A DNA stretch of 64,000 bases from Camelus dromedarius (Eukaryota), in NCBI RefSeq assembly GCF_036321535.1, contig NC_087451.1:41974001-42038000 (forward strand), read 5' to 3'. The notes below the pieces were generated by a model. The model ran no database searches and was not told the origin of the DNA. It saw only the letters and a program-made list of their open reading frames with translations. Below are positions 27,401 through 62,899 of the stretch, piece by piece. The position numbers were made by a program, and so were the translations under genes. Position 1 is the stretch's first letter. Every line of letters starts with the position of its first letter.

Positions 27401-30400
27401 AGTAACTGGGGACAGGTGTGGGGTGGAACAGGTCTGTTGCCATTGGAGGTGAGGGGTGCAGAGTAGCTGGCTTCGTTGCATTAATTATAATAGGGTGAGA
27501 CCCGCTGGTGTGGAATAGAGAGGGAGAAGGGGCTGGGGCTGTGATTGAGTAGTGGGACTAAGGACAGGTCTTGAGAAGAGAGCGAGGCACTGTTTGCTTA
27601 GATCAGAGTGCTGTGTTTGTGGTGTGCTTTACAGAGAGAGGGAGAGACCCAGGAACCTGGAGGGTAGTGCACTTGTAATAGAGGAGAACAAATGTGACTA
27701 TTGGATCTGTTCCTTTAGCTCTAACCACTGTGCCCTGCTTTCTAGGTTTATTGTTAGCTCCTCACCTTTTGTAAATGAATGTTACCTGTAGCCTGTCTGG
27801 TAAACAGGAGAGCCTTTTCTCAAGGCTCTGATCTTTCAGGATATTAACACTTCTGCACTTATATAAAGATAACAAGTTGCAGAATAGAAAGTAACCTTTG
27901 TTTTCTTGGAGGTTTTGCAGGACCTGGCCCACGTGCACAGCTGCAGGAACAAAGAATTCCTACAGCAAGAAGTTGCAACAACCAACCCCCCCCCCTTTTA
28001 ATTTATAAAAGGAGACTGTATTCTGACTGGAGGAGGATGGTTCTCCAAGACATTAGTCTGCCATCCTCTTAGCCGGCTTTCCGAATGAAGTCACTATTCC
28101 TTGCCCCAGTACCTCGTCTCCTAATTTATTGGCTTCTGCGGCAGCAGAACTAGTTGGGACTCGGTAACACACTGGGGAGGAGTTCAGAAGGGGCAGGACC
28201 AAAGTCTTGTTCCCGCATTGTCTGCTGGGCCCCTCCTTCCCCACCCAGCGGAAGATGGGGAGGCCCTGATGAGAAAGGTCTTTGTGAAGAGGGGCAGGTC
28301 CAGGTCTCCAGAGGCTGTTACGGTTTTGGAGGGCCCAGCAGGCTTCTGGGGCTCCAGTGCCCTAGTGGTAGGGGATGGGGTTGTCTTAGTGACTTGAGTC
28401 CCTTCCAGTGTTGTGTTGTTCCTCTTCTGTTGCCTCGATGTCTACTTTTTCTTTTGTCAGCACGTCACAGTGTCAGGTCTTGAGGCCAGTGCCTCACACA
28501 GGGGCTGCCCTAGGCCAGTCTTCTGAAGGCATGGGCGGGGGTGGGGTGGGGAGGCTCAGCCCAGGTCAGATTGATCTAGATCAGGGGGAAGCATGGAATG
28601 ATGGGGTCCAGGGCTAGGGCGGCTCCCTTCTCTCTTCTTGGTCTTCCCCTAGCAGGGGCCTCCTCTGCTGGTTCCACTTCCCCCAGGGAGCCAGCAGTGA
28701 GAATGACGCCCACTCCCAGCCTGGGCCAGCCCCAGGAGTCCAGCCAGGGGTGGGACCCAGCATAAGGCTGTCTCTCCTACCACCTAGCTCCTGGAGCAGG
28801 AGATTGGACCACTAGGACTGGTCCCCTGGTGAGGGAAGAACCGTCCTGTGTGTATACTCAAGGAAACACCTGGCACTGTTTCTTCCCTGGGCAGAGACTT
28901 GTAATGATTTTCTTGTCTGCCCCTTCATCTGTGCCCCTTTTTTTGAAGGAGTTGACCGCATCCTCCCATCTTTTGGGCAAGGAGGCTGGATGAAAAAAAG
29001 AAAAAAGAATAATGCTTTGACTTTATTTGTATTACTTAAATTTTTATGAATATGTTTCTATACTACATCCTATCTAAAAATTGAAATAGAGATATAAGAA
29101 AAAACTAGCAATGTAAGAGATCCACAGTAATGTGTAAGTTATTCAGAGAGTTAACTTGAGATATTTGCACTCTCAAAGAAGAGTCTAATCTAACGCAGAT
29201 GATGCTGAAAGAATGCTAATTCTTTTAGTTTATGAAATGTATAGAGGTATGTGTGTTCCTTCTCACAGGGGTTAGTAACTTGGGGAGTGGGGCTGCTACA
29301 GATTCAGGTCCTACTTCAGTGGCAGGTCCACTTATCTCTTCTTCAGATCATATTCTCAAGCAGGAGCTACAGGATGACACAACTAAAACAATTTACTTCC
29401 TTTGTGTACCCACAAGCCTGTAATAGGCTTCTGCAGGACTTCCTTGGTTCCTTTCATCATCACCTTCACCACCAGAGATCAGGGAAAGCTTCTGATTAAT
29501 CAGGGGCCATGGAAGTGATACAGAAAAGTATTGATTTAAAAGTAATAACATTTATTTAGGGCTTCCTAGGAACTCATTGCTTAAAATGTGGTCCTATTTA
29601 ATCTTCACAACCACTCTTATGAAATTGGTATTAGTAAATCTCAGGTGTATCCAAAATAAATCTCTGTGTCAAGCTGTAATATTTTTAGGCTTCTTATGTC
29701 TTTAGGTTCGTCTGGGCACCAGACATAAGATGTTTCAACCTAATGCCCTTGCCCTAAGCAGCTCCAGATGCCAAGAATTGGCCAATTACTACTTTGGATT
29801 CAATGGGTGGTCAAAAAGGATCATAAAGGTAAAGTGTAGATTTTCTTTGACTAACCAGACTCCTTTCAACATTGAAATCCTAGACTTCAGAGAGAAGACT
29901 AGAACTGGGTTGTGGGGAGATGTGAGAGACCTCCAAGTGGAAGTGTCTGAGCATTGCCCTGCCACTTAGAATTGATGATAATCTCAATGACTTGGTGGTG
30001 GTGTTCCTAATTTTCTCCAGTAGTTGTATGATATATAATAGAAAATAGTTGTCCATATCTAGTAATTCATTTGCAAGTCTTCCTTGATTTTGAAGCAACA
30101 GGACACCTCAACTATTAACTGGGCTTGGTGAAGTTTAGATTTTACTTCTAATAACAAAAAATTTTGAAGTCTTGCCTTTAATTTGAAGTCCTGGGTAGGG
30201 GTGTAACTCAATGGTAGAGCATGTGCTCAGCGTGCATGAGGTCCCAGGTTCAATCCCCAGTACGTCCATTAAAAAAAAAACAGAAAAACTCATCACCAAA
30301 ATTCTACCAGCTTCAGGATCTTTCTGACCTTGAAGAAAGGGAAAATGAAGGTATTGTGGCACAACATCAGAAGCAAAGCCTGAAGTTCTGTGCTTTAGAG

Positions 30401-33400
30401 GTGATGTTAACATCCTATGAAGCCAGGAGTCCTGGAGCTGGCATCACCGAGGAACCCTTGGACAAGCTGGAGGAAGGTCTGTTTTCCAGTGTGTGGTGGG
30501 TAGTGAGGGGGTGGGATTTCTCCTTTTTCCTTTCTTTCTAAAACTTTTTTTTTTTCAGATACATCATCACTCTCGCTAAGCAACTAAAACCCTGGGCAGA
30601 GTTTTTCTGCCTTGTGATACAGATTCTTATCTTAGGCGATGCCTGACAGAACCTTTAACTTTAAAATTTTAGAGCTGATTGCCTGTCAAGAAGTTTAGGA
30701 GGAGGGAAAAATTCTTTTTTTCCATTTTTGGTTAATAATTTGTTTTGTGCTAAAATAATCCTTTCCAATACAGATTTCTTGTAGCCTTCAGTTATCCCAA
30801 CAAAATAATCATCTAAAGATTTAAACTCTTGTGTAAATGTTCAGTCCTTTGCCTCCTATACAAGGACTTGAGTGGATAAAGTCAAATGTAGATCCCTAGA
30901 AGGGTTTTTCCAGCTGGTACTGAGTTTTTTCCTAGAACCCATGGCAGTTGCAGTTAGGGTTTTAAGTCAGAGGCAGGTCTGTTAGTTAATGGAGTGGAGG
31001 AGTGCTGGGAAACAAAATGCTGGAAAACAAGCTGCTGGACAACAAACAGCTAGAAAAGAAGCGACTCCTAAATCTCCATAAGCTTAAAATATTATATTCA
31101 CACTTGCTTGCTTAAAATGCACATGCTTGCTTTGTTTTAATGTTTTGTGCAGTAGATGACCTATAGCACGTATTATGCTAAGGAAAATTTGTGGTGAGCA
31201 ATCCTGACGTTGACCATAAGGGCACGAAGGAGGGCAGCTATTTCCTTAGGGTGAAACAATGGACAGTCTTGGAAAGCCAGATCATCCATTAACAGAACTT
31301 TGTTCTGGCATGAAAGCATGCTGTTGAACCCAGGGGAAGTATCTGCTATCTTGAAATGTCCTGGAGGCAATGACAGGATTGACTCAGAAATTTTGCATAC
31401 CCATAGGAGGGGGGTGATTGTTCCTGGAAGGGATGGGCCTCAAATTAATCAGTTAACCAGCAAGCAGAACTTAGTGCTTATCGCATGAAATATCCAAAGC
31501 CCCACATCTTTGATCACATTTTTTTCTGAGCTGTATACTCCTAATTAATATGATGCTGACCAGGCTTTCGGCACTCCAGATCCACGAGATGTTGAGTCCC
31601 CTGGTCCCATCTTTGTTCTTTACTTTGTCTCTTTGTTTCTTAAGTCTTTCATCGCCTGTCCTCAAACATGATCCCGAGCTGCACTGGACACAGCAGAGGA
31701 GGCTCCACCATCCACCTGAGTGGCTGATGCTCTGGGAGGGGCTAGATCATCTGCACTACCACCAACTCTGTTTCATTGTGTGTTTCCAGCCGTTTAAGCA
31801 CAGGAGAGCAGGAGTGTAGCTTCAGCTTGTCCATTTGAAATCTGTATGATGTGAGATTTGTGCCACATTCTTGGCTTGCATCTCCCGTCTAGTACTTCAG
31901 GAACTTCCAGAATTGATCTGGGCAGTAAAAATGTGCCCTGCCAGGATATGTCTATAACAGAGCCATTCGACCACACGCTTGTGTTGTGCCTACCTTTAGT
32001 TGCTCTGAGAATGATCTAAGAATTACAGGTGCATTTTTCTTTTTAAATGTATAACATAAAAATCAGTTATTCAGATAGGCATTTTAAATCAATTTGTTTT
32101 TCTTGGATTTAGGGCCATTATCATTACTTATGAAAAGGAAAATAACCCAGAAGCTTGCTATTCAAAGGCTATGACAGATGCATTCCAGAAACTGCTGATT
32201 GTGGTTTTAGGTAAGACTTTATTCTTTTCTTTTTTTTTTTTTTTTTTGAGGGAGGAGATAATTGGGTTTATTCATTTATATACTTGTTTTTAGAGGAGGT
32301 GCTGGGGGTTGAATCCAGGACCTCATGCTTGCTAAGCATGTGCTCTGCCACTTGAGCTATACCCTGCCCACTCTAAGACTTTCTCGGTTGTCCTTGAAGT
32401 GCTAAAAAATAATGGTCACCTAAAACACTATATATTCTTTCAGTCACTAAATTCTTTCACAGCGGCGGTCTCAAATTTGTTCTCTGGGGCATTTCTGAGA
32501 AGAATGACAGCAAGTATTACTGTGTCCAGCGTGCAGATGCAGACCGCCTTGTCCCACTTCACACAGAGAGTGCTCCATCCAGCTCTTCTTTCTCGATCGC
32601 TCGCTTATACAGGTTGGTAGAGTGATTATAAGCCTTGGACACATGTGTTTGAGTCCTAACTCTGTCTCTTAGGGTTTTTTAAATGCAATTTTAGGTTTTC
32701 TAGCCAGAGAGCTTTGGAGGTATTTATTATCTCTAAGCTGCATTATCGTTTTCTGCAAAATATGGTTAGTCATTCAGCTCATCTCATGGGGGATCGTGTA
32801 AGAGTAATGAGATGGTGAATGTAAAAAGCTTAGAACTGTGCCTGGAACATGGTAAGCAGACAAAATATGTTGGCTGTTATTATTATTGTTGTTTCCCTGT
32901 TGCAGAGTTTTAGATTTAGTATTAGATTATGTTTTTGGAGTCAATTCAGTTTGTTTTCTTTTCTCATGTGTTGTGTGAATATGATTCTTATAATAAATTA
33001 GCTACGTTTTTGTGAGCCTTGAAAGTGGTCATGCTGTTAAATGGCATCGATTGTGTTCCCTACTGAGTTACACAGTGGTGAGAACGTCACAGGCTCCGCC
33101 CAAAGGAAACTTTATGATTGTTTATTCCAGGAGCAGAGTCATTCCCCTGCTTCACAGCCCTGCAGACTGAGAGACTGAGAAAGCCTAGTGAAGTTCTCAG
33201 AGACCTTACTTGCTTATTAAGAGTTGACCGTGGATTGGTCTCAGCCTCCCAGTGCAGGCAGTCCTTCCTGTGAAGGTTGACTTCCCTGGTCACCAGGCAG
33301 AATCCCCATCAGCTGTCAACTTTTGATTAACAACCTTTAAGAACCAAACTAAATGTCTGGGTTGTTTACCTGTTCCTAACATGCTGAAGGTATTCCTTAC

Positions 33401-36091
33401 TTGCACTCACAACTCCTTAGACCAGAAAGCCTCGTGACTCTAGTTTGCCTTGAGGGAAGTTGTATTGCCCAAAAGGTACATCGGCCAGTTTCTGCCAGCA
33501 GTGTTCAAATGCTTGCTCTCTCTCTCTCTCTCTCATTCTCTCTCCCTTTCTCTCTCTCTCACCCCAAAGCTTTGTTCGTTGTATCTGGTGGAATTTTGGT
33601 CCCAAGGAGCAGACAGTAGCCTTGTTTCTAATATGAAGTATCTGTTATAGTCCGATGGTGTCCATCCCAGGTTTGAACTCACTTTGACCCCCACCTAATG
33701 CCTTACTGTTTAATCATATTATGATTGAACATTTTTGTTTCTGACAGCTTTTACTTCCTGTGTCATTATTTCTCAGTTCTTATTTCTAAGACCATAAAGT
33801 TTTTTGAAGCAAGCAAAGTTGGTACTTCTTATATACATTTTCACAAATAGTTGTGATAAATACTGAAGTGTCAGTTGAGGGAACTGCTAGGAAAATGCTC
33901 TTATTTTCTGCTTTTAGAAATCAAAAGAATGTCTAATTATTGGGTGCTACCGTTGTATACAGAAAGTTTTAGAACAAGAAAAGTTCTGAACTGACCCTTG
34001 TTAACTGTATTTCAGAAAACAGTAAAATGGCTGTGGTGTACAGACCCTGTGAAGAGGTCACAGGTGCTAGGACTGAAGAGGAAGTACGGGATTTAATTCA
34101 AGTATGTGGAGATAAAAACTCGAGGGGCACCCAGCCAATGTCGCCGTAATTCAAAACAACCAGCAGGATTTAGAAGACTTTGGCTTGTCCACTCAGCTCT
34201 GTCATCCTTAGGGAAATGTGAAACTCTGAAACTGCTTTTGAGGCAGGGGATTTCTGGGGCTTTTCCTGAAGTCCTGACCCTTGGCTCTGACCCTTTATTT
34301 GCAATTTGGAGAGCAGGACTGAGGGCCATCAGCGTGCTTCTGCAGTTGTGGACACAGGAGAAGACACAGGCCTTTTAAAACTCCCCTCAAGCAGAATCCC
34401 AGGCATTTAGGAACCAAGTAACTATGGCCTTAGGTTGGATTATGCTGCAGCGTTTGAAAACTATGAATGCCTTTCAAATAAGGTGTGTTGTTACTCAGAA
34501 CTCAGCATCTCATATATATCTTATGTGAAATATTTTGCTGAAAAACCTTTCTGTAAATCAATTATATGGATGTCCTGAATTAGAGATTAAGTTGTCAAAG
34601 TAATTTCTAAAAGAAAATATTAATGAACTGCATGTAAGATTTTTTTAATGAGTAAAAATGTGTTTCGTGTCATTAAGAACTTAATGTGCAGCTAGATTTC
34701 TTTTCTAATTATGTAACTCTCCCCAGCGTTGTCAAGTTTGTTATGAAGAGAAGAAAGCAGAGAAAGAAAAGATGGTTATGTTCAATGTTCTGAAAAAGTA
34801 TTTGAAGTTTTTTCTGCACAAGATATTTTAATTCAATTTATACCAAATTATTTTAAATTCAGTTTAAGTGAGGGACACTTCAGTCATATCCATGTTTGGG
34901 CTTTAAAAAGTCTAGCTTCTTGTGAAATGTGAGAGGAAGGGATTCAGTATCGATGCTAAAGTTTTCAGAAAGCCGATTATAACAACAGACCCATTCCTCA
35001 CTGGCCAATCTTGGAATCAATTCCATTTAAAAACCGTTAAGTGCTTGACACTGGGAATAAGATGAAGCTCCTTCTCCATGGAGTTTAGTGGCCAGAGGGT
35101 GTGCCAGATAATTAAAAAGGACTAAAATTAAAGAGATTATAAGGGCTGTGAAGGAAGTAAACTGGGTGCTAGTTGCAGTATTTCAAGAAAATTATTTGAC
35201 ATGCTGACTTCATTGAGAGGGAGGAGGTAATTAGGTTTTTATTCATTTACATATATTCTGTTTCTTAAAAATATAATTTTATTGAAGTATAGTCAGTTTA
35301 CAATGTGTCAATTCCTGGTGTACAGCACAATACTTCAGTCATATAGGAACATACATATATTTGGTTTTCATATTCTTTTTAACCATAAGTTATTAGAAGA
35401 CACTGAATATAGATCCTTGTACTATACAATATAAACTTGTTTATCTATTTTGTACATAGTAGTTAGTATCTGCAAATCTCCAACTCCCAACTTATCCCTT
35501 CCCACCACCTCCCCCAGTTTATTTTTAATGGAGGTACTGGGGATTGAACCCAGGACCTTGTGCTTGCCAGGTATGCACTCTAACCACGGAGCTATCCCTC
35601 CCCTCAACATGCTGACTTTAACATCCTAGGTGTCTTCTGTGTGTGTGTGTGTGTGCACACAGGGTAGACCTCTGAAAAGTGGCATTGTAATTTTTTCTAG
35701 ACTAACGGCTGTGCTGAGACAAGGTGAGATGGCGAAATTTTCCAGTGCTAATGTTAAGGGCTGTTCACTTGGTTTCCAACTCTTTCCCAGAATGAATTGC
35801 TCACCCGCTCCAAAACCCTTCCTGTAGAAATTTTGGAGTCATCACTGATTCAGTGGTAACCCCTAATAATAGAGTGGTGAATTTTATAATCAGACATGGA
35901 TCCTGAGAGTTTAGAGGACATGACAACACTTTAGAATAACTGTAAATTGTATTCCCCTCCCACTGCCCTAACTGGTACTCATTTTGTAGGTCAGTTACTT
36001 TTCTTGGAAGCAGTGTGGCCAAGGGAAGGAAGAATGTCTCTCAGATTTCAGTTTTGAGGAGGAGGAGTTCAGAAGGCCGGAACTGGACTAG
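24364..36091 (+). CDS. RDM1: RAD52 motif-containing protein 1; exons 24364..24459, 24991..25170, 29706..29828, 30311..30476, 32113..32210, 34016..34101, 35990..36091. Exon 5 is 1 nt short as read, giving a premature TGA at 32172-32174
   Basis: Exons translate as MAEMVPFAVPTESDKTLLVWELSSGPTTQALQ / HSLFTVFSQFG...PGFYAIIEF...SPVK / VRLGTRHK...CQELANYYFGFNGWSKRIIK / LQDLSDLEERENE... / GPLSLLMKRK... / ENSKMAVVYRP... / VSYFSWKQ...RRPELD*. All splice sites are GT-AG. Confidence 0.92.
24620..24774 (-). mobile_element. Vic-1-type SINE in RDM1 intron 1
   Basis: Reverse tRNA-like head; TSD CCACAGATT. Confidence 0.85.
26550..27260 (+). promoter_or_regulatory. Intronic CpG island carried by the CIC-derived insert
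   Basis: High CpG density, several GC boxes, GGGCGGAGCCAAT (GC box plus CCAAT) near 26836-26849, C18 run at 27124-27141. Confidence 0.8.
27674..28169 (+). mobile_element. Solo LTR, ERV1-like (copy 2), nested in the CIC-derived insert
   Basis: TGTAATAGAGG...GGTAACA with 4-bp TSD CACT (27670-27673, 28170-28173). Confidence 0.9.
30193..30280 (+). mobile_element. Vic-1-type SINE
   Basis: GTAACTCAATGGTAGAGC...GGTTCAATCCCCAG plus A-tail, ending about 30 nt before RDM1 exon 4. Confidence 0.85.
32225..32370 (-). mobile_element. Vic-1-type SINE
   Basis: Poly-T followed by the reverse SINE body, just after RDM1 exon 5. Confidence 0.85.
35215..35605 (-). mobile_element. Vic-1-type SINE interrupted by an L1-like 3'-end fragment (about 35265-35516)
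   Basis: SINE tail half at 35215-35260 and head half at 35517-35605, separated by a TTTATTGAAGTATAG... L1 3'-UTR-like sequence. Confidence 0.7.
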
Positions 36092-36337
36092 CACTTTTGA
36101 ATTTCCCCGAAGGCCAGGCCCTGTGACTTCCTTGGGAAGCTCTGCACCATCACCCCCACCCCTGCACTGCTGGAGTCCGGGGCCACTCTGGTCTGCAGCC
36201 CAAATCCTGCCTCGTTGTGCTGGGGGCCAGGCCGGGGTTGGAGAGAGGGCCCGGCTGGAGGTGTCAACTTTGCTGGGGGAAGGATGGCCTGGGCCCTGGG
36301 AAAAAGACTGACTCAGATTGGATCTCCACCCTGACCT

Positions 36338-36343
36338 AATAAA
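36338..36343 (+). terminator. RDM1 polyadenylation signal AATAAA
   Basis: AATAAA about 250 nt after the RDM1 stop codon. Confidence 0.6.
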
Positions 36344-36502
36344 GGTCGTGTCACTAAAGGTGTGTCAGAAATAATGGGTGGGGCATGAGGCAGGGGAGGG
36401 GTGCACATGTAGCCAGGCTGCCATATCGCTTGGGTTTCCATTCAGCACACCAGGCCAGAGCCCCACTGGCCTGGGTCGCTGTGCCCAAATCGTCTGCAGA
36501 TC

Positions 36503-37709
<1,207 letters not shown>

Positions 37710-38009
37710 TAAGAATTGCTTTTCCTCATTTGTTCTCTGCATCCTGCCTGACCTGGCAGCCTTTCTTTGAGGTCTTCCTGGGTCTTCCTCATCTCCCTAG
37801 TTCACATTGACTGTTTTTACCTTTTGTCTTATAAGCAATTTCTTATCTTCATTTGCCTTCTTACTATCATTCCTTCTTCTCTAGTCTTTTACTTATAATT
37901 GCCCTTATTCTTTTTCCTTCTCTATTTTTTACTCCATTATTTAATTTCTTAACATCTACTCTTCTCTCATTTTTGCTCCATCCTCGTTCCAGCACCATGT
38001 CCCTCTCCC

Positions 38010-39055
38010 CATCCCATTGTGGGTAATACAACAAAGTGGTTAAGAATAGAGATTCTGGGGTCAGACTACCTGGGTTTGAATCCAGGTCTGCCATTTGTTA
38101 GCTTTGTGACTCAGTTTTCTCATCTGGAAAATGGGGATTATCATAGTCACCATCTCATAGGATTTAGATGAGTCAATACATGTAAAGCTTTTTTATCAGT
38201 GCCTAGCATATATCTGAGTGTTAGCCATTATTATTATTTGATCCCTCAGTTATATTGAGAACTCATCTTTACCCTCTGGATTTCTATATATAGCACCCAA
38301 TTTATGCCCAACCCAAAGCTAAGTACTGTGGGAGCCACAGAAGTATGGCATTGTCTCCAGAAAATGACAGTGATAGGTGGGAAGAAAGGGAATACACCTT
38401 AACAAGGAGGTGATGTGTAATTGAGTATTAAAAGAGATACAGAGAGGTGCTGTAATTAACCAGAACCTGGAATCACTGGGGTGTGGAGGTCAGGGGAAAC
38501 TGCACGGATAAGCTAAAACTTTAGCTGGGATTTAAAAGACTGGCTGTGATTTGTTAGAGTAAAAATAGGGAGTACAGTCTAGGGAAAGATGTGGTTGCAG
38601 GAATCATCAGGATTTAATAGATCAATCTAGCTGTAAAGAATTGGGTTAGGCAGCAATGAAAGATATGCTTATGAAAGACCTTGACTGTCACAAATGGGGG
38701 TTTGAAAAATATGCTATAAGATACAGGGAGCCATTGAAAATTTTCAGGGAAAAGAGATAAGTGATTAAAATAAGAAGCTTATTTTAGATTCCAGATGTAA
38801 TGTGATCTAGAGAGGAAAGTTTGATCCAGGGAGACCAAATAGAATGCTGTAGCAAAATCTAGGAGGAAAGTGAGAATGGGCTGAATTGGAGTGGTTGTGA
38901 CAGGAGCAGAAGAGAAATCCTGAGAGCACTACAAAGGAAAAACCGACAAGATTTAGTAACTGTCTAGAGTTGGTGGGGTGGGGGGAGGTGTACAGGAAAG
39001 AGAAAAATCAAATATGTTGATGAGGAGAATGATGGTGGTACAACAGGTCGAAATA
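38010..39055. mobile_element. MIR and L2 fragments between LRRC37 copies 1 and 2
   Basis: GGGTTTGAATCCAGGTCTGCCA MIR core and purine-rich reversed L2. Confidence 0.6.
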
Positions 39056-39058
39056 CAG

Positions 39059-39738
39059 TTGGGAAGGAGAGCTTGGACCCTGGGAAAAAGCCTGACTCTG
39101 GTTGGATCTCCACCCTGACCTAATAAAGGTCATGTCACTAAAGGTGTGTCATAAATAAAGGATGGGGCGTGAAGCAGGGGAGGGGCGCACATGTAGCCAG
39201 GCTGCCATATCGCTTGGGTTTCCATTCAGCGTGCCTGGCCAGTGTCCCACTGGCCTGGGTCACTATGCCCAAATTGTCTTTGGATCATGTTTCCACATGT
39301 TTTTTTTTTTTTTTTTTTTTTGCTGCGGCTCTTTGCTTGGCAACCACTCTGGCTTCTGGCCCAGGGAGTTCAGCCCCTGGAATGGTCCCTGGACTCTATC
39401 CAGCTGACCTCCAACTCAGAGCTGGGGGACTTTAATTACTCCTTTAATTCCTTCTCTACAGCCTCATCAGGAGTTGACTGAGACTTTGCTTCCATACCCA
39501 GACAGGAATACAGATGGAGAGCTGCCCACTGGGCCGTATCAGTTTGCTGTTCCACGTCAAGATGGGAATGACACGCTAACCCAGCATCAAAAGCTCCCAG
39601 AGGAGGTTCCAGTGGTAGGCTGGGGTTGGAATTAGGTCCCAGCTCTGTCTCCTCAACCCAAAGGTAGTAACATTAAAGCTGCAGACGTAGATCAAGCTGA
39701 AGATCACCAGTCATCTCTACGAGGTAAGAGTTCAAAAC
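39059..39738 (+). pseudogene. LRRC37A: Duplicate of RDM1 3' end plus LRRC37 5' segment (copy 2)
   Basis: Aligns by eye to about 36275-36965, including CCTAATAAAGGTC; T-run insertion at about 39299-39321; 16-nt deletion near 39462. Confidence 0.87.
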
Positions 39739-40640
39739 TCAGGCTGCCGTAACGCTTGGGTTTCCACTCAGCGTGCCTGGCCAGTGAGGGTCGCTGTGCC
39801 CAAATCATGTGCAGATCATGTACACATGCTTTTGGTTCCCATGACCCCTCTTTTGTGTGGCAACCATTGTGGCTGCTCTTCCAGGCAGTTCAGCTCCCGG
39901 AACGGTCCCTGGACTCTGTCCCACTGACCTCTGACTCCCCTGGGCTGAGTGAGACTTGTCTTTTGCAATCCTCTAATCTCTCACCTGAATCTCCCCATGC
40001 GCTTATCAAGGGGTGCGAAAACCTGCGACCCCACTGAGGAGTCTTCTCCAATCCAACAGGAGTTCCCAGCCCCACTCCTGGAACACATTAGGGACAAAAC
40101 AACATTCTCTAGCCCAGCAGGAGGCCCCAGCTAGCCTTCAGAGCCACCTCAGGAGGTTGTAGCACAATCTCCAGTGCATCGTGAGTTGACAGTTCCAGCT
40201 CTCAAGCTGAAGCTCAGCATTCAAACTCGTCACAGTTAAACCTTTCAATCTGGGCCTCACCATAACTCCAGCAGCTACGATGGAGGGTGAACGTCCTACA
40301 GCCCTGAAGCAGACATGTGGGAGAACCCCGCTCAGCCTCTGGGGCCACCTGAGGAGGCTGTAGTACAGCCTTCATGGGTTCAGGCTGTGGCAGCTCCAAG
40401 TCCAGTTCAGGGTTCTAACTCAGGATCCAACAGTGCCCAGCAGAGTCGGGGCTGAGGCTTCAGGGCTGCAGCACTCTGGCAAGCTAGGGGGTGGGGCCGC
40501 GGAGGGGCGGGATGGCTGAGACGCCAATGAGCAGGGGCACAGCAGCCCTCTAATCCCACAGAGACTGGCCTTGAGACCACCCTGCTTCAGAGCCCTCCCC
40601 TTTCCCAGCCCAATCCCCATGCCACACTGACCCTAGCCTT
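39739..40640 (+). pseudogene. LRRC37A: LRRC37 exon-1 remnant (copy 3), degenerate
   Basis: WQPLWLLFQAVQLPERSLDSVPLTSD...SPESPHA followed by frameshifted LRRC37-type repeats (QQEFPAP, QQEAPA, AEAQHSN, VKPFNLGLTITP). Confidence 0.78.
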
Positions 40641-41934
40641 CAGCCTGCATTGCCACTAATGGCCTGTCCCTTCCATTTCCCACCTGTGACCTGGCCCCAG
40701 CCCTACCCCCACCCCTCACCAACGGTCTTGCGTAAATGCAGCCTCACCCTGCCTGGGGAGGAGAGCCCGAGGGTCCCCCAAATGCCCTGCCTTCTGCCTT
40801 GCCTGCGGTTGACCACTTGGGGCTGGAGAGGAGGGCATCAAGCTGTGACACCCCCCAGGAGGAGTTGAAGGTTACCGGGACCTGCCCTTTGGAGATACAG
40901 ATGGCCATGGGCAGAGGCTGCCGCAATTAACCGTTGTGTCAGTGTGAAAAGGAGTCCCAAGGATTAGAAACAAAAAAACCAGAGGTCACCTCTAATCTTT
41001 CTTGACTGAACTTTTACAAGGCTTCACTCAGCACCTGCTGACTGCAGGCGAGGCCTGGTGGCCCTCTAGTTTGACGCCACGCTGTGCCCCTTTATGACTA
41101 CTTTTCACCCCGTCAACCTCTGGTCTGTTCTTGTGTTTTTCTTCTCTAAATTATAAACCTACATCCCAAACATCTATTATCTCCCACCTCAATCATGCCC
41201 TACAGGTACGATTTAAGAGGACTGGTAATCAGCCCAGCCACTTCCTAAACTATGTCACCTTGGGCAAGGTACTTAACCCCCGTCTCAGTATCCTCATTTG
41301 TAAACTGGGTATAACAGTCACAACCTCAGAGTACAACTGTACTGATTAACTGGCTAATGCGACTGGTGTACAGAGAGCACTCAGGAAGTGTGGGCTATGA
41401 TGAAGTCCCTCTGACCTTCGGGTCATGCCACGTGCCGCACACGCAGCTGTAGCCACTGTATCTCTTGTGTTTCCTCTGAGACTATGGCTGTGTCTAACCT
41501 CTACTTCTAATACTTCACACAGTGTCCAGCACACAGAAGGCGTTCAATAAGCTATTAACAGGAACTGATGGAGAAGCCGGCCCTGAAGAGCCCTGGTCAT
41601 TTAGGAAGCCAGTCTTGAGAATGTTCTCAGGAACCCGTCAGCCATAGTGCAGTCCTCCATGGAGTCTCCCAGCAGGAGGATGTTGCTTTTGCCCTGCAGC
41701 TGCTGGAAGTAGCTGGAGTTCTCGCACACAGGGCTGTTCTTGTATGTGTGCATGAGCTGGCCCTTGAATACCCCTAGGAAACCCTAAATCATCAAGACAA
41801 GGGACAGACAGAAGGGCTATAAGGATCCATCTGGGGCCAGTTTCCCACTGTCTCTGCCACAGAGGAAAGGGAATCCAGAAAGCCATAGATAGTGCCAGAA
41901 CTTCATTGCAGTCAAAACTCAGGATCAGCAAGCG

Positions 41935-42130
41935 AGGGCTCGTGGGCTAGATTTAGCCTGTTGGTAAATTATGTTTTACTGGAATACAGCCAGGCCCATT
42001 TGTATACATCTTGTCTATGGTGCCTTTTGTGTGCGACAGGGTTGAGTAGTTGTGACAGAGATTGTACTGCCCACAAAGCCTGAGATCTTTACTACCTGGC
42101 CTTTACAGAAGAAGTTTACACCCCCTGGTT
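41935..42130. mobile_element. MER58A-like hAT element
   Basis: TTTTACTGGAATACAGCC...GTTGAGTAGTTGTGACAGAGA...GGCCTTTACAGAA motif. Confidence 0.75.
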
Positions 42131-42879
42131 TAAACTAACAGGGACCATCAAATATTGTCAGTCACCTCCTCTGGCGGAGGCACATGGCCTGTGATGCAAG
42201 CACTGCTCCAGCTCACCTCAGCTGTGGGCCACACCCTAACCACGGGTCCAAGGGATGAAAATTCCAGCCATTGGTTTTAAGGGGAAGAAGTCAGAAGATG
42301 GGCAAGTCAGAGCAGCCCACCTCTAGCTCCAGAAAAACAAGTCCAAGCCAAGCCCTTGAGTACCTCGGATGGCACATGATCCACGACAGTGACATGGAGC
42401 CTGGGTGACCCCTAAACTAGGTCCTCCCTGGCAGAGAGCTGACTGTTGTCCAAACACCCAAAAGTGGGTCCTTCAAAAGTAACTGTCTTTAGATGGCATT
42501 AATTAATAAATCACTGTCCAGGAGGAAAGAAGCCAGACTGCCTTCCCCTCCCCCACCAGGGTTCATGTTTAGGGAGAAGCCCCCCAGCTGGCGGTCCCCA
42601 CCCCTCTCCCAGGCCCTGCCCAAATGAGATTTGACTCACGTTTTCATCAAGCTCCATGCAGTTAGCCACAATGTGGATGCTGGGGTGAAACACTTTTTCA
42701 TCTGCTGGATAATTTCTTCCACGGTATCTCCAATGCCCGTGGAGAAGATGAAGAGCGGAATGCTGTTCTGGAAGAGGGTGTTGAAGAACATCTTGTACCC
42801 ATTCCTGAAAAGAGATCAATGGGTTCTGAAATAGCACTGCCTCTGCTACTGTTCTTTATTTTCTACTTGGGTTACTTTA

Positions 42880-43110: not shown

Positions 43111-45713
43111 ATTTTTTTGTTTGTTTGTTCCTGGATTATTTTGCCTTAGGAAATACAACCAGGCAGCTGTCCTGGGGCAGCTCTGCAGAGGAATACCCCA
43201 AACCGCCCCGGGCACTTACTGGGTCTGCACGTGTCTCTACTCCCCTGGCTTTCCGTGAGCTAGCGTCTTTCCCCAATCAGGACACAATCCTTGAGGGCAG
43301 GGACCCGTGTTGACTCCTTCTAAGTGCCCTCAACCCTCCTCCAGTAAAGAATGCTCCAGCAGAGAGAGCTGCGCTGTGAAGGCTACGGATGATCAAGGGT
43401 CCCAGGCTGGCCAGCTCGTGTCTGGGTAAAGAATGCCAGTCACCATGGGGACTTGGAAAGTCTTTTTACCATTGGGAACAAGGAGCTAGATACTGTTTGT
43501 TCTAGGAGATGGAGCCCTGGTCATATTCGCACCATACCCACTACTGGCAGACTCCTTCTGAGGAAACATTCAGGGGTAGACAATCCCCTGGCTGTGCCCA
43601 GAGAGGAAAAAGAAGACCTTCTCCACGTCAGCTGCTCACGGTGCCATGTCTCTTCTGACTCTTCCAGCAACAAACTCCACTCCACTCCTTCCCAGCCTTC
43701 TCTTCTGTGAGCAAACCCATTCCAAACAGTCTGGCAGAAATGTTTTCCAGAGCAGGCAGCTCACCTGAGTGTTGCATCGGACTCTCACCACCGGGGCTCT
43801 CTGAAAGCCCTGGACCTTCTGCTGCCATAGGAGAGCATGCAGTTTGGTCCACCCGGAAACAGACGCCCCACAAACCCCCCAATTCAAACCACTAAGTCAA
43901 GTGTCCTCTCCCATCTCAGGGCTGTGTCCCCTCTGGAAGTTCTGATGGCAGAGGAGGCCTCTTTTCCCTCAGAGCCACTTCCTGAAGAACCCTGGCTGTC
44001 CTTAAAGGAAGAGGGTGAGACAGCAACACAGCACAGTAGAGACGAGAGCTGGCGAGATGACACTGAGGTCAAAGCTCTCCTGAGTCCCTTCCTCTGTGAC
44101 CCCACTCTCTGGAGAACTGGGGCTTTGCCCAGTGACACTGGCTTCCTTAGGAGGGTTATCGCCCCAAAGCACTTAATACCCCAAACCAAAGGGCTTCTAA
44201 CTCATTCCAAAGATTCTCCGTAAGCCCCCTACTGTAGCCACAGCCACAAGTAACGCTGGCTGTGTCTGGTCAGTTAGCTCTAACACCTGGGCTTGTGGCT
44301 TTCGGTAAGGTACAGGAGCTTGCTCCTCAACAAAGCTCAGGAAAAACAGACCCTCTCCCAGACCAACCCACTGTGAAAGCCAGCGGCGTTTCACCACCAC
44401 CATCACTTACCATTCCACCATGTGGGGCAAATTCTCTTTGATGGTCCAGTGTGGGTCAATCTCAACTGGGTAATAGTGGTGAAGGAGTGCTTTGAGCTGC
44501 GACATTCAAAATGAAGAGAAAAGCCAGTAGTCCACATCAGGTTTTCCCCAGCAGAGGCTTACTGTGCAGTGTGAGAAAAAAAATCACACCTAGATGTGAC
44601 TTCATGTAATGGAGTGACTGGATCTGCACAGCTGAACTTCCCTCTGCACTCACCCTGAGAGAGTGAGGTCCAAGCATCAACCATATAAAGAGCTTTTGCT
44701 CTCAGATGAGAGGTTATTAGGATTTTGCTGCTGTGGCTGTTACAAATTAGGTCAGCATCACATCAGCACTTAACCAAGAAGAACTGATTTAATATTGTAT
44801 TTCCCCAAATAGGTACACTTCCTCAGGTGGTAGGTAAGATAACTTTGGAGGGGGGGAAATGGATAAAAACACTTTTCATTTGAGTAATTTTGGATTCATT
44901 TCAATGTTAGAAAAAGAAGGAAAACTAACATATCAAACTCATGCTTTCATAAAAGATTGTTTCTTTTTCAAGTTAATTACATTCAGGTCTTTAAAAGCAG
45001 GGCAATTTACACAGATATGGCAGAAATCACGCAAGTGAAACTGGAAGGCTGTAGTTTGGGACGCAGCATGTTAGGGGGTAACTGTCACACTGCCAACGTC
45101 AGGTGGACCACCTTCACGGGGAGCATCTATGTACCTTCTCTGGTTAAAGGTCACCTTCCACATGCCAGGAACTTCCACACTCTAGGGAAGCCACTACAGG
45201 GATCACGTGTCACACGGGATGGGTCAGTAACAATACCCAATAAAAATGGGAATTGATTAAGTAAAGAATTCTAATTTTAATATATGCATGGTCTCAAAAT
45301 ATGAGAGCAAATGGAATCCCCAATCATCAGTCCAAAAGAGGGTTAAATACCAAGCTTGTCGAAGACAGAAAATTCCTTAAATGTGTTAAGATTCTCAATG
45401 TTTTCTTGTGTGAGAATTTTTCTAAAAATATGAGAATTCAACAAGAATATAACTGTTGAAAAAGGAAAAGAAAGAATTCTTACATAAATTTTGCCTTTAT
45501 TAATTTCTTCAGGAACCCATCAGCACCAAGAATCTTAGTTTTCCCTAGCTTCTTTATCCTAGACAGAGCATTCAAACCTACTGTCTTATTTGTGGACGCA
45601 GCTTTCTGGAGGTTGCTAAAATCAGGGATGGGAGAAACCAAAAAAAGTGACTTGCCAAAGGTACTCAGTTACTGGAGAGGGAACCTACTTTAAGCTAAAA
45701 GTGGCATCCCCTG

Positions 45714-45823
45714 GTGGGAGGGAAATAGTTCAGTGGGAGAGCACCTGCTTAGCATGGACCAAGTCCTGGGTTCAATCCCCACTAACTCCACTTAAAAAAA
45801 AAGTGTTTAAAAAAAAAAAAAAA
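45714..45823 (+). mobile_element. Vic-1-type SINE
   Basis: tRNA-like head plus A-tail, in NT5C3B intron 2. Confidence 0.85.
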
Positions 45824-45879
45824 GGGCATCTCCAGAGAGACAGGCTTTAGAAATATAAGAGCCTCCCCAGCCATCCCCC

Positions 45880-46400
45880 AACCCCACCCGGCCGCCCCCA
45901 CCTTGCCCCCGGCGGTACTTGTAAGCGGTCTCCCCCACCCCTGCGGAGGGCGCCCACAATCTCCTGCACCAGCCCGGGCTGCCGCATCAGGACCGTTGCC
46001 TTCATCAAGGTGCTCACCTGTCCCGAGACCCGAGAGAACGGCTGACCTCGGCACGGCGCTGAGCCCATGGGGAGCCTACTGGCCGCGGTGACGCGGCGGG
46101 ACCCGGGTGGCCCGCTGTGGGTCTCGGAGAGCCGGAGGCTCGGGACCCGCCCTACGCCGGTCCCCTTCTTTCGCCTCGCCTCCTCCGTCATGGCGCTCAA
46201 ACGCTGGTCTGAGGCGTTGGGCCAACGGCCGCCTCGCGGCCGTACTGCACAGGCGTCGCCTCCCGCCTGGGCGGGGGTGGGCGTGCCGGGGGGGGGTGGG
46301 CGTGCCGGGGGTGGGCCCGCGGGCTGCAGGCCCGCCTACCCGCAGAGCCGCCAGAGGCAGGCGGCCTCGCGCGGTTGGCGCGGCGCGCTAGGTGAAAACC
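45880..46400. promoter_or_regulatory. CpG island at the NT5C3B 5' end, head-to-head with KLHL10
   Basis: CpG-dense, with GC boxes around NT5C3B exons 1 and 2. Confidence 0.75.
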
Positions 46401-47654: not shown

Positions 47655-50600
47655 ATGGAGATGGAGAGCGCCGCGGCCTCCACACGTTTCCACCAGCCTC
47701 ACATGGAAAGGAAGATGAGTGCGATGACTTGTGAGATATTCAACGAGCTTAGGCTGGAGGGCAAGCTCTGTGACGTGGTCATCAAGGTCAATGGCTTTGA
47801 GTTCAATGCCCACAAGAACATCCTCTGTAGCTGCAGTTCCTACTTTAGGTATAACAGGGTTGCTGAACTAAGCCAATGGGGGAACTGGGCTCATTCTGAG
47901 CCCTTTTGATTCATTTTATGTTTCCTACACTGTTATCTTAAGCTTAGGGACAATGTCAAAGCCCTGGGCTCCTGTAGGCTGGCTCTTTTGTCTTCTGTAG
48001 AGGTACAGCCTGTGCCAAAGCTTCTCTCTCTCTGGTTTTCAACTGGATTTCAATCAACTATTGGTGGGCCGGGTGCTTTTTCTCTTTGACTTTCATATAA
48101 ACCAAACTTTGGGAAGGGTGGACACCTGTACTGGATTTCCTACTTAAACCTAGATGACAGTTCCACTTCAGCCACTCCTTAAGTCCCTGTCTGAGACTAT
48201 CTTAAACAGAGTGATAAATTAACAAGGATTGAGAGGATGGGAAGGGGGATGAGAGGAAAGAACAAAGGAAGTATTTATTAGAAGAAAAAGGGAGTTTGAG
48301 CCCAAATCATTGGAACCTAGGAAGTTAAGAGCTATTTTGTTCATGAGCTGAAAATGTTTGAGTACTCAGTTCCAATGAAGATATGATAAATGCATCCCAC
48401 CTGTTGCTAAAAATTCTCTTTCAACTATCCCTAGAGCACGGTATACAAAAAGAAAAAATGACTACTTTAAGCTTTGCAGGCCATATAGTCTCTGTTGCGA
48501 CAACTTCACTCTACCTTCGTAGTGGGAAGGCAGCCATGGACAATGCTAAATGAAAGGGCATGGCTGTGTGCCAATAAAATTACTTATGGACTCTGACATT
48601 TGAATTTATTGTAATTTCCAGGTGTCACAAAATCTTTTGATTTTTCCCTCCCTTTAAGAAATGTAAAAACCTTTCTTAGCTCATGGGCAGTATAAAAACG
48701 AGGTAGGCTGAATTTGGCCCAGGGGCTGTAAGTTTGCAGACCTCTTCTCTAGAGAATTTGGTCTCAGAGCCCATAATCCCTTAAACCTCCTAGAAAAAAT
48801 GAAGCAAAAAATATATTAGGCCAGGGACTGTCTCGTGTGACACCTAGAAAAGTACCTAGCTCCATAGCAGAGCCCAATAGGTAGCTGTGGGGCAAAGCCA
48901 GCAGGATTGGAACAAAGCGAGAAAGCCAGAAGGAATATGGTCAGAGAGGTATTCCTGGTCCAGATCTCAGAGGACTTTTGTAGTCCCTGGTAAGGACTTT
49001 GTATTTTACTCTGAGGAACGAGGGAAGTCAGTGGAAGGTTCTGAGTAGCCGAGGAGCATAAACTCATAAGGCTCACTCTGGTGGCTGGGAGAAGACTATA
49101 AACTCTGGAGGTGTCAAAGGCAGAAGCAGGGAGATCAGTTAGGAGGTGACACCCAGTAATCTAGGCAAGAGATGGTGGTGGCCTGCACCAAGAAGGTAGC
49201 AATATGAGGTGAGAAGTGATCAGGCTCTGGATGTGTGCTGACTGAATACACTTGTTTAAAAAGTGTATTTGCTCAAGTTTAATTTCCTTAAGCAAAGTAG
49301 CATTTGGTGGGCAATGGGCTGAGACAGATGAGACCTGGGTCTTACTCCAGCTGTGGGTTCCAATTTCTCCATCCAGAAAATGGGGAAAAGGCCTACTTAT
49401 CATGAAGATAGGAATAAAAATGACAAAAGTCAAAGTTCTTGGAAAGGTTCTCTTGCCCACTGTATAAAGCCAGCCCTCCCCCTCCCCTTCCTCACACCAG
49501 TTTATTTCCAGTGTATTCACTGTGTGCTATTTGGAAAATGGCCAAACTGTCTGCAACAAGAAAATGGGGGACAGCGTGGCAAACTGGAGAGAAATGTTTC
49601 AGTGACTGCTCACTTTTTTCTTTTTTCCAGAGCTTTGTTTACAAGTGGCTGGAACAACACTGAAAAGAAGGTATACAACATCCCTGGCATTTCCCCCGAC
49701 ATGATGAAGTTAATTATTGAATATGCGTACACCCGGACCGTCCCCATCACACCTGACAACGTGGAGAAGCTGCTGGCTGCTGCAGACCAATTTAACATCA
49801 TGGGTATTGTCAGGGGTTGCTGTGAGTTCCTCAAGTCGGAGCTGTGTTTGGATAATTGTATCGGCATCTGCAAGTTCACAGACTACTACTACTGCCCTGA
49901 GCTGAGGCAGAAGGCCTACATGTTCATACTGCACAACTTTGAGGAGATGGTGAAGGTCTCAGCAGAGTTTTTAGAGCTCTCAGTCACTGAACTTAAGGAT
50001 ATCATTGAGAAAGATGAGCTCAACGTCAAACAAGAAGATGCTGTATTTGAGGCCATTTTAAAATGGATTTCTCATGACCCCCAAAATAGGAAGCAGCATA
50101 TTTCAGTTTTGCTTCCCAAGGTCATTTAGTCATTTTTTTGTGGGACGCTTAATTGTTCACTTTTGATTCATTTATCCCAGAGGGATTGTCCCAAGAGCCA
50201 GACTCAGATGTTCTGACAGATTCCAGGGCTGTAGTTACACGTCCATACACTTAGATATGTACACATAGAGAAGGCGTCTCCTGCTATTCTCTGGAATTTT
50301 GCAATTTTCTTTGCCCCTGCATAGCTAGTTCCTTCTACCCTAGTTGTATTCTCTTTGACTAAAATTCTTCCTGGTAGTGGGGGAAGGAGAGGGCAGGCCT
50401 TCAAAGGAATTTTAGTCTTCCTTTTACCCTTCCCCTTCTGTGGGTTTCCCTAACTGAGACAGGGGTTGGACTAGAAACCAGACTATGAGTTTTGCACTCA
50501 ATTGTAGCCATTTGGTGCCAATTCATGTTATTTCGCATACAGAGACATAGGTATCCAACCTCTGAATGATGACCACAGCTTTTTCTGGTCTAATAATCCA

Positions 50601-52666
50601 GTCCAGTGGCCAAGGAATGGCCTAGCTCTGTGACCATTTGAGATAGCTTCTATTAGCTCATTCTCAGCATCCAAATGTATACCACCTCCAAAAAATAAAT
50701 ATTTCAACTGTGAGTTGTAAATTTACAAAAACAAAACAAAACATGACCCTACTGCAATTCAGAGGCAGACAGTAAAACTGTGGTCTTAAGGACATGGATT
50801 TTCCAGAACCCTCACCTCATCTGAATGACTTNNNNNNNNNNNNNNNNNNNNNNNNNNNNNNNNNNNNNNNNNNNNNNNNNNNNNNNNNNNNNNNNNNNNN
50901 NNNNNNNNNNNNNNNNNNNNNNNNNNNNNNNNNNNNNNNNNNNNNNNNNNNNNNNNNNNNNNNTATGACCTAAACATGAACGGACCTTCAAATTCTGACT
51001 TCACCAACCCACTCACCAGGCCCCGCCTGCCNNNNNNNNNNNNNNNNNNNNNNNNNNNNNNNNNNNNNNNNNNNNNNNNNNNNNNNNNNNNNNNNNNNNN
51101 NNNNNNNNNNNNNNNNNNNNNNNNNNNNNNNNNNNNNNNNNNNNNNNNNNNNNNNNNNNNNNNNNNNNNNNNNNNNNNNNNNNNNNNTTATATCATTGGG
51201 GGGTTCGATAGCGTAGACTATTTCAATAGTGTTAAGCGTTTTGACCCAGTCAAGAAAACTTGGCACCAGGTGGCCCCGATGCACTCCAGACGTTGCTATG
51301 TCAGCGTGACAGTCCTCAGNNNNNNNNNNNNNNNNNNNNNNNNNNNNNNNNNNNNNNNNNNNNNNNNNNNNNNNNNNNNNNNNNNNNNNNNNNNNNNNNN
51401 NNNNNNNNNNNNNNNNNNNNNNNNNNNNNNNNNNNNNNNNNNNNNNNNNNNNNNNNNNNATGGAAAGGTAAGATGCCGGATGGCAAGGGAAGCAGCTTTA
51501 GGGAATGTGAAAGCAAACAGGCCCAGAAATAATGGTTTTTAGGGGTGGATGGAAAACAGAAATGGCAGTATCTACTCTGTAATACTAACTCCTCCATCGA
51601 ATGACTAAGTGGCCCTTTGTAACTATCTTTTGTGATTCTTACTTATTTTTTGGTGGGGGGAGGTAATTAGGTTTACTTATTTATTTATAACAGAGGTACT
51701 GGGGATTGAACCCAGGACCTCGTGCATGCTGAGCACATACCCTACCAATGAGCTACACCCTCCCCGCTTTCTGTGATTTTACTTACTAAAAAGCAATGCT
51801 TGTACATGAGGAAAAAAGAAACTCAGATTGCAGACGCAACAGAAACGTCCCTCACCTTACTACCGCATTCATACCCTTTCTACTCCCCAGGAGTAAGTTT
51901 TAATAATCTTGGAACTCTCTTCACACAGGTCTACATATGTGGTGGGTTTAATGGAAATGAATGCCTGTTTACAGCAGAAGTGTACAACACTGAGAGTAAT
52001 CAGTGGACAGTCATAGCACCCATGAGAAGCAGGAGGAGTGGAATAGGCGTAATTGCTTATGGAGAACACGTATATGCAGTGAGTCTTTGTACAACAAAAA
52101 TAATAGCCCTAGATTTTCTATTAGCAAAGAAGTTTACAATTACCATTGGTAATAATTTGAAAGCTTTTCTCCCATGGAAGATAGTGGAAAAGGGAGGTAT
52201 GAAATCACTAGTTTCCCTGCCCCCCAAAGAGGGCATCCTCAGTGAACAGAAGTGATGGTTAACAGCCAGCCGTTTCCTCTGCTGTCCACAGGTAGGCGGC
52301 TTTGACGGAGCTAACCGACTTAGGAGTGCAGAAGCCTATAGCCCAGTGGCTAACACTTGGCGCACGATCCCCACTATGTTTAATCCTCGTAGCAATTTTG
52401 GCATCGAGGTGGTAGACGACCTCTTGTTTGTGGTGGGTGGCTTTAATGGCTTTACCACCACCTTTAACGTTGAGTGCTATGATGAAAAGACCGACGAGTG
52501 GTATGATGCTCATGACATGAGCATATACCGAAGTGCTCTAAGCTGCTGTGTGGTACCAGGGCTGGCCAACGTTGGGGAATACGCAGCTAGACGGNNNNNN
52601 NNNNNNNNNNNNNNNNNNNNNNNNNNNNNNNNNNNNNNNNNNNNNNNNNNNNNNNNNNNNNNNNNN
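47655..52666 (+). CDS. KLHL10: Kelch-like protein 10 (spermatid CUL3 adaptor), expected 608 aa; exons 47655..47848, 49631..50120, about 50850..51467, 51929..52078, 52292..about 52666 (exon 3 start and the stop codon lie in N-runs)
   Basis: MEMESAAASTRFHQPHMERKMSAMTCEIFNELRLEGKLCDVVIK (BTB), BACK region and kelch repeats (YIIGGFDSVDYFNSVKRFDP, VYICGGFNGNEC, VGGFDGANRLRSAEAY). Frame is preserved across the Ns. Confidence 0.96.
48430..48752. mobile_element. MER58B-like hAT element
   Basis: TTTGCAGGCCATATAGTCTCTGTTGC...GGCTGTGTGCCAATAAAA motif. Confidence 0.75.
48820..49260 (-). mobile_element. L2 fragment in KLHL10 intron 1
   Basis: GGTAAGGACTTTGTATTTTACTCTGAG...GGAGATCAGTTAGGAGG motif. Confidence 0.65.
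51640..51765 (-). mobile_element. Vic-1-type SINE
   Basis: Reverse SINE body in KLHL10 intron 3. Confidence 0.85.
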
Positions 52667-52869
52667 NNNNNNNNNNNNNNNNNNNNNNNNNNNNNNNNNN
52701 NNNNNNNNNNNNNNNNNNNNNNNNNNNNNNNNNNTTTAAACTTGTAAGAGTACTGGAAAATGTTCAACTTAAGGGAGCCAAGGGTTGGATGACTGAAGGG
52801 AGTGAGATGGGAGGAAGAAAGCAATTATATTCAATGATGCATAGTTTAAAAAGGAAAAATCACAGTGCA

Positions 52870-55800: not shown

Positions 55801-56811
55801 CTTTAGCAACATTTCTCTAAATTGTTACTTTCTTCCCATTTTGAAAAAAGTTTTAGAAAGGAATGATGAGGATTCCATACAATATGCATTAGAGCAAAAT
55901 TTAAAACTGAAGGCATTGAGTGTCGATTGTCACAGGCATTATTTACACTAACTTATCCTCAAATAAGCTCGCAACTCCTGAAAAAGTGTCTTTAAATTGT
56001 TCAATGCCTTTGATTTCTTATTCTCGACTAATAATACTTTTCTTCCTAGAAAAACAAATTCCACAGGTATAACTTCCTCTGTATTCAATCCATCAACTAA
56101 AGATCAATACTTTTGCCAACCACCATTATCTCAGAGTGATGGCTTGAAGTATTTTATAACACAGTTGCTAAAGAAATTAAAAACACTCAAAAAATGCATG
56201 ACCCAATCACAAATTTCTCATCAATCATCTCTTCAAGAAATAACAAAATAGCATCTCTAGATAAATAAAACAAACTATCAATGCAAACATTCTGAAACCA
56301 TCTTGCTGAAATATTGTGCTTTTTTCCCTTCAAATTTCAATCTCACTATTGCACACACCTCCTGCAGATGAGGGCTTAATGCATAAATTCTGATCTTGTC
56401 AAAACTAACCATTCAGGAAAAAATGAAGATTATCAAAATAAAATGTGCAAATAAAACTGGTGCTTAAAGCATGTTCAAAACATAAATCCCTAAGACAAAG
56501 GAGTTATAAACTGTTGGCAGAAAAACAGCCAAGTAACTACACCTGGTTTTTCAACTTCTCTTTAATAAGATCTTATTTAGCTAGCACATACACACAAACC
56601 AAAGACGGATCAAGACTGCAAACCAACAACAATTACCACATATTGAATTGATTTTCCCATTCTTCAGTTTTTAAAGAGACTTCCTTTATACGGGGTGATA
56701 ATCGGTTCATGTAGAAAATAAGTTATCGACGTAATTTTTCATGTAACAGTCTGGGTATCTTCAGCCTCATGAAACAGGTATAACTGTTTTAAGCTGCATG
56801 TATTAGAGAAC
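52870..56811 (-). other. Probable long KLHL11 3' UTR (about 3.9 kb)
   Basis: AT-rich and nearly free of recognisable repeats; minus-strand AATAAA at 52891-52896. Confidence 0.55.
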
Positions 56812-62800: not shown

Positions 62801-62899
62801 TGAGCCGGCGGCGGCCGTCTCCATGCTCTCCATCTCCAGCACCTGAAGAGACGCAGCAGCAGCCGCCGCCGCCGCCGCCGCCACTGCCGCCGCCGCCAT
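56812..62899 (-). CDS. KLHL11: Kelch-like protein 11, 708 aa; exons 62899..62355 and 58393..56812
   Basis: 545+1582=2127 nt; poly-Ala N-terminus, BTB ([16 protein letters not shown]), BACK and kelch repeats; ends [10 protein letters not shown]. Confidence 0.97.
59990..61760 (+). mobile_element. L2 fragments in KLHL11 intron 1
   Basis: C/T-rich L2 ORF remnants and a 3' end ...GGCACTTAATAAGTATTTGTTC. Confidence 0.75.

Follow-up and report, generated by a model that had tools for sequence, protein, structure and literature searches.

The 64-kb stretch of dromedary camel DNA analysed here (the window) carries a LYZL6-like lysozyme gene, RDM1 and pieces of LRRC37, followed by NT5C3B, a KLHL10-like gene and the first exon of KLHL11 (Table 1). 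LRRC37 and NT5C3B meet tail to tail, each without its 3' part. NT5C3B, on the minus strand, begins at 46.0 kb and reaches as far as 40.74 kb; the exons of all genes were searched singly by reference. Seven N runs of 132-156 bases each occur in 50832-57582, in the KLHL10 introns and downstream. In the reading of the earlier note, the rearrangement placed the spermatid gene KLHL10 beside the sperm genes LYZL6 and LRRC37; no evidence was obtained that this proximity matters.

Table 1. Features of the camel window (positions are those of the whole stretch).
Feature	Position	Strand	Evidence
LYZL6-like lysozyme gene, coding exons 1-2	18813-18950, 19891-20049	plus	Pfam Lys PF00062, E 8.4e-14 (second exon); LYZL6 name by peptide reading
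RDM1	29706-29966, 30218-30538	plus	Pfam DSRM_RDM1 PF25517 (8.6e-11, 8.8e-5) and Rad52_Rad22
RDM1, last two exons	~32113-32210, 33973-34146	plus	By reading only
LRRC37 copy A: upstream DNA, exon 1 (~36405-37712, ends in LRR N-cap), 1.36 kb of intron 1	34982-39071	plus	Colinearity with hippo
LRRC37 copy B: 5' fragment corresponding to copy A 36277-36924	39061-39714	plus	Repeat families D1-D7, spacing ~2787; blastn
LRRC37 copy C: 5' end and exon-1 repeat units, with frameshifts; adjoins the junction	39740-40452 (~40450)	plus	blastn, Pfam
Filler, about 290 bp (289)	40453-40741	none	Join inside the filler or at its right edge
NT5C3B acceptor AG (40750-40749) and first 7 nt of last coding exon (40748-40742)	40742-40750	minus	Alignment, windowed identity
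NT5C3B intron 8, full length (848 nt)	40749-41596	minus	blastn with L004, L005, L006, L007
NT5C3B penultimate coding exon (exon 8)	41597-41783	minus	Translations; PDB match to cN-IIIB; DNA alignment
NT5C3B exon	42640-42815	minus	tblastn with armadillo P0002; frameshift at 42696
NT5C3B exon	43783-43860	minus	tblastn with armadillo P0002
NT5C3B exon	44422-44499 or 44404-44539	minus	tblastn with armadillo P0002 (first range); blastn with L001 (second range)
NT5C3B exon 1	45913-46047	minus	blastn with L001
KLHL10-like gene, head to head with NT5C3B	47655-52252	plus	Pfam BTB, BACK, Kelch_1; KLHL10 name by reading
KLHL11 exon 1	62354-63076	minus	PDB KLHL11 chains 4ap2 and 3i3n, E 8e-75

The NT5C3B remnant and the end of its homology

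The 50 residues encoded by 41783-41634 matched residues 192-242 of human cN-IIIB (chain 7zee; PDB search, E 3e-18, 67.5 bits), and the match of this exon-8 piece to cN-IIIA was weaker (E 6e-9, 38.6 bits). The camel gene is thus closer to cN-IIIB than to cN-IIIA, and together with the presence of a Pfam UMPH-1 match this identifies it as NT5C3B. A HMMER search with the exon-8 piece led to the armadillo NT5C3B protein (P0002, XP_058140233.1). Comparison of this protein with the window by tblastn revealed changes of frame at 42696 and after 41634, and gave no match in the 64 kb for its final coding exon, which is 44 codons long. Alignment of the exon-8 DNA with that of four other mammals showed that this exon owes its frameshift to a deletion of 7 nt and not to slippage in a homopolymer, and that the camel exon-8 splice donor is GG in place of GT. 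With these two lesions, the frame change at 42696 and the absence of the last exon, there is no intact reading frame through all exons: by its sequence, camel NT5C3B is a decayed pseudogene. The L001 exons situated between exon 1 and 44404-44539 had no blastn match in the camel window, which suggests a further loss inside the gene (window 44540-45912).

The outgroup loci used for DNA comparisons were two rodent-like host contigs from JGI metagenomes (L001 and L002) and contigs of three more mammals (L004 together with L005, L006, and L007), found in public assemblies via ORFs running from exon 8 into intron 8. The exon-8 peptides of all fetched outgroup contigs differ from human chain 7zee; P0004, which looked primate-like, was left out of the comparisons. 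The last exon lies 0.85 kb past the penultimate exon in L006 and L007, and about 1.1 kb past it in L001 and L002. In L002 a convergent FKBP10 follows on the opposite strand about 5.7 kb further on, recognized by FKBP_C and EF-hand ORFs and by the C-terminal residues HEEL. The order NT5C3B then FKBP10, given for human in the earlier note, is therefore present in sequence data. The FKBP10 ORFs of L002 gave only chance matches to the 64-kb window. Short peptide motifs of JUP, which provide a weak test, were unmatched in it.

Intron 8 is 848 nt long in the camel, close to the 869 nt of L006 and the 853 nt of L007, and has therefore been kept whole. It shares 67-76% identity with the outgroup introns (blastn). 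The camel minus strand aligns to L004 at 76% from 41896 to 41135, stopping where the L004 contig ends, and the alignments at 67-69% identity reach down to 40853 with L006 and to 40859 with L007. The start of the intron aligns well across mammals because of a MIR-like element at ~41190-41560, which is common to the outgroup introns and was identified by eye only. In a three-way alignment, patchy homology continued from ~40853 to 40742 and took in the polypyrimidine tract, the AG of the splice acceptor and the first 7 nt of the exon. Beyond 40742 the identity of the camel sequence is at chance level, whereas L006 and L007 are still 90-100% alike. Local alignments of camel 40852-40600 with the ends of the L006 and L007 introns both end at 40742, with scores of 38 (none of 500 dinucleotide shuffles scored as high) and 27 (equalled or exceeded by 12 of 500).

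The last exon and downstream DNA of L007, L002, L001 and L006 had no blastn match on either strand of the window. Because homology ends at 40742 and the last exon is unmatched, NT5C3B is cut after the first 7 nt of its last coding exon. The cut took the remaining 44 codons together with the 3' UTR and polyadenylation site. NT5C3B had been described earlier as stopping at 41597, after exon 8. A last coding exon on the minus strand is indeed found there, but homology extends about 850 bp further to the left and the gene was severed within exon 9.

LRRC37 fragments and the interval of the join

The three LRRC37 copies of the window, A, B and C, are all 5' pieces and follow one another head to tail, in plus-strand orientation. 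The LRRC37 locus of hippo (L008, from GCA_030028045.1) was used as the cetartiodactyl reference. Copy A is colinear with L008 8649-14409 at 70-80% identity, and its 36549-36989 segment matches a hippo protein named 'LRRC37B-like, partial' (E 2.3e-27). Its exon 1 measures ~1.3 kb versus ~3.2 kb in hippo (L008 9641-13040), most of the repeat region being gone; the match to the exon-1 repeats of hippo lies in copy C (40101-40314) instead. The intron of copy A ends at 39061-39071, where the 5' end of copy B begins. Copy B contains a 22-nt poly-T run at 39300-39321, where hippo encodes the signal-peptide region; this run is absent from copy A. Copy C is 73% identical to copy A over 39740-39937 (blastn), and then shows Pfam LRRC37 repeats (PF15779) in shifting frames at 40135-40236, 40211-40360 and 40291-40452, with scores of 27.6, 25.2 and 25.6 bits for a cut-off of 27. 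Copies A and B had no Pfam match, and the sole lead from the Atlas was to an LRR N-cap (0.84). The PF15779 units and the N-terminal region homologous to annotated LRRC37 place the fragments in the LRRC37 family.

None of these copies is a working gene. Searched by tblastn with hippo exon-1 ORFs, copy A has an in-frame stop and a change of frame at ~36987, and copy B an in-frame stop; copy C is frameshifted. No LRR exon of LRRC37 was found in the window, and hippo L008 beyond 14409, which comprises more than 6 kb of intron 1 and the following DNA, had no match there. All LRRC37 sequences of the window are therefore dead 5' fragments. By K2P distance, copy A differs from copy B by 0.13 and from copy C by 0.20. 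Since the best pair of copies, A and B, shares only 0.65 kb at ~88% identity, the window holds no segmental duplication in the usual sense, for which copies must span 1 kb or longer with an identity of 90% or above.

Upstream of LRRC37, the camel sequence is homologous to that of hippo from 34982 onwards, 0.84 kb past the last mapped RDM1 exon, and neither RDM1 nor LYZL6 is present in the 8.6 kb upstream of hippo LRRC37 (L008 1-8649). The adjacency of RDM1 and LRRC37 may itself be a junction, in which case the LYZL6-RDM1-LRRC37 block is a mosaic.

As LRRC37 can be followed to 40452 and NT5C3B homology to 40742, the interval of the break is 40453-40742. The camel-lineage breakpoint, placed earlier in a box from 40600 to 41600, is thereby narrowed to ~290 bp at the left edge of that box; that a junction exists here is borne out by the sequence. 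LRRC37 had been thought to fade at ~40640, and plus-strand repeats are indeed present, but LRRC37 can be proved only to ~40450: the frames beyond are proline-rich and the filler matches neither gene. Comparison of the filler with the window, with hippo L008 and with the NT5C3B loci L001-L007 gave nothing significant. The filler is GC-rich yet is not a CpG island (observed/expected ratio 0.16-0.25). Its DNA similarity to the hippo exon-1 repeats was not significant, and the protein-level matches were proline-rich and probably compositional.

Both genes have lost their 3' ends, as the earlier note proposed, the last exon of NT5C3B and the LRR exons of LRRC37 being unmatched in the window. Its description of two cut genes holds in that both are truncated, but the LRRC37 side consists of three dead fragments. 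The flanks are separate in outgroups, with NT5C3B in L006, L007 and L002 and LRRC37 in hippo L008, a locus from which NT5C3B is absent. The arrangement in all four differs from that of the camel. No homologous protein was found for the 97-aa frame that spans the junction, exact look-up of the ORF at 40736-40927 returned no record, and an exact 36-mer across 40724-40759 had no match in metagenome contigs. A search of metagenome contigs with an exon-8 alignment confirmed no related locus.

Origin and age of the junction

We consider it probable that the join marks a real and old rearrangement, fixed in the camel lineage, in which a mosaic LYZL6-RDM1-LRRC37 block lies tail to tail with a truncated NT5C3B. 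The most likely cause would be a duplicative, multi-step rearrangement of an LRRC37-centred duplicon, which would have landed in the NT5C3B-FKBP10 interval by copy-and-insert or by replication template switching; a large inversion between duplicon copies may have followed. Either route would account for the presence of partial copies in tandem and of a filler of ~290 bp. In the alpaca there are four Lyzl6 genes, and the listed neighbours of Lyzl6 include Lrrc37 and RDM1 (PMC3141428); four alpaca genes fit with the existence of a LYZL6-carrying duplicon in camelids.

A simple inversion, resulting from two breaks, one in LRRC37 exon 1 and the other at the start of the last exon of NT5C3B, is possible but doubtful. 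The tail-to-tail geometry agrees with it, and the reciprocal junction would then join NT5C3B exon 9 and FKBP10 to the rest of LRRC37. However, the LRRC37 side is made of three nested partial 5' copies and a filler, not of one cut gene; with three old dead 5' fragments in tandem, the junction has a mosaic look rather than that of a clean two-break product.

The age of the junction was roughly estimated from divergence figures. The K2P distance between camel and L004 is 0.12 in exon 8 and 0.31 in intron 8, in short alignments (187 nt for the exon). With an exon-to-intron distance ratio of ~0.22 in intact orthologues, the neutral decay of camel exon 8 is roughly estimated at ~0.07 substitutions per site. 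LRRC37 copies A and B have diverged by a similar amount, 0.065 per copy. If L004 is another laurasiatherian, these short alignments would roughly date the junction to tens of millions of years ago. With such an age, all living camelids would be expected to carry the junction and a dead NT5C3B.

It is unlikely, more so than the inversion, that NT5C3B was dead beforehand and lost its last exon at the join later and harmlessly, in DNA that had become neutral, so that the rearrangement was not the cause of the loss. The gene carries several independent disabling lesions and the unmatched exons downstream of exon 1 noted above, as would be expected from an earlier death. The decay of ~0.07, close to the 0.065 of copies A and B, is nevertheless compatible with a single episode, although measured on only 187 nt.

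The reality of the junction in camel DNA was examined with a 31-mer search of public runs, using 186 words sampled from 40200-42000 (about one per 10 bases); a false join is expected to remove about three sampled words. Fourteen DNA runs, all under one organism label, contain 0.99-1.00 of the sampled 31-mers. The share is 0.99 in the four of these that were not flagged as a possible source of this DNA. Contigs derived from the reads of two samples (2015 and 2024) contain every sampled 31-mer across the region. Including six RNA runs, the 20 runs that contain the sequence come from nine studies. Positions 15354 to 50831 are free of N runs, which leaves 25 kb on the left of the join and 10 kb on its right without a gap, and the sequence at the join is unique within the window. 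Contiguity of the join is well supported by 31-mer presence, a kind of evidence that stops short of read-level proof, and an assembly error is unlikely. LRRC37 regions are difficult to assemble, but a wrong joining of the two flanks by the assembler is highly improbable in view of the uninterrupted and unique sequence, of the 31-mers recovered from the 2015 and 2024 samples and the unflagged runs, and of the long decay of NT5C3B, which fits a true old truncation.

The junction region 40200-42000 also appears in RNA libraries: the six RNA-seq runs, from reproductive-tract samples and a second organism label, contain 0.83-0.89 (83-89%) of the 31-mers. DNA carry-over in these libraries is possible.

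Relation to known duplicons and gene losses

NT5C3B is a conserved housekeeping nucleotidase that clears m7GMP. The join provides a tangible cause of its loss or, failing that, a marker for it, and if common to other camelids it dates this loss and gives a natural knock-out. The camel remnant resembles a unitary pseudogene formed by rearrangement: a conserved single-copy gene gives way to unrelated DNA where its 3' end and last exon should stand, and frameshifts and splice-site loss have accumulated. Unlike a typical gene-truncating breakpoint, the camel cut lies 7 nt into an exon and a whole intron was kept. In the literature searched, no paper connected NT5C3B with camels or with the loss of a gene, and nothing useful was found on the gene order of camel chromosome 16.

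LRRC37 is single-copy in cow and in dog and has expanded in primates and rodents (Giannuzzi et al., 2013; PMC3530683). In primates, the LRRC37 duplicon marks unstable sites (PMC3530683). The camel locus resembles the primate LRRC37 core duplicon of chromosome 17 (PMC3530683) in that pieces, mostly partial and dead, lie along the homologue of human chromosome 17 and coincide with changes in gene order, and in its testis-linked expression. Unlike the primate duplicon, the camel copies are old; their divergence of 13-20% and lengths of only 0.65-4 kb set them apart from recent segmental duplications. Furthermore, no recurrent rearrangement is seen at the camel locus. The locus can also be compared with the copy-number variation of Lyzl6 (Irwin et al., 2011; PMC3141428), as the camel LYZL6 lies beside RDM1 and LRRC37-family DNA; in contrast to the camel case, that study describes neither an NT5C3B junction nor a duplicon structure.

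The junction is a fresh example of a lineage-specific breakpoint and in other respects fairly ordinary. A bolder reading, which we put forward only tentatively, is that LRRC37 acted in camelids as a duplication-prone core as it does in primates, carried LYZL6 and RDM1 with it along the homologue of human chromosome 17 and seeded a large rearrangement, and that one such event cut NT5C3B, which would make all camelids natural knock-outs for the m7GMP-specific nucleotidase. The tandem dead LRRC37 fragments of the camel and the four Lyzl6 genes of the alpaca hint that LRRC37-linked instability is not restricted to primates.
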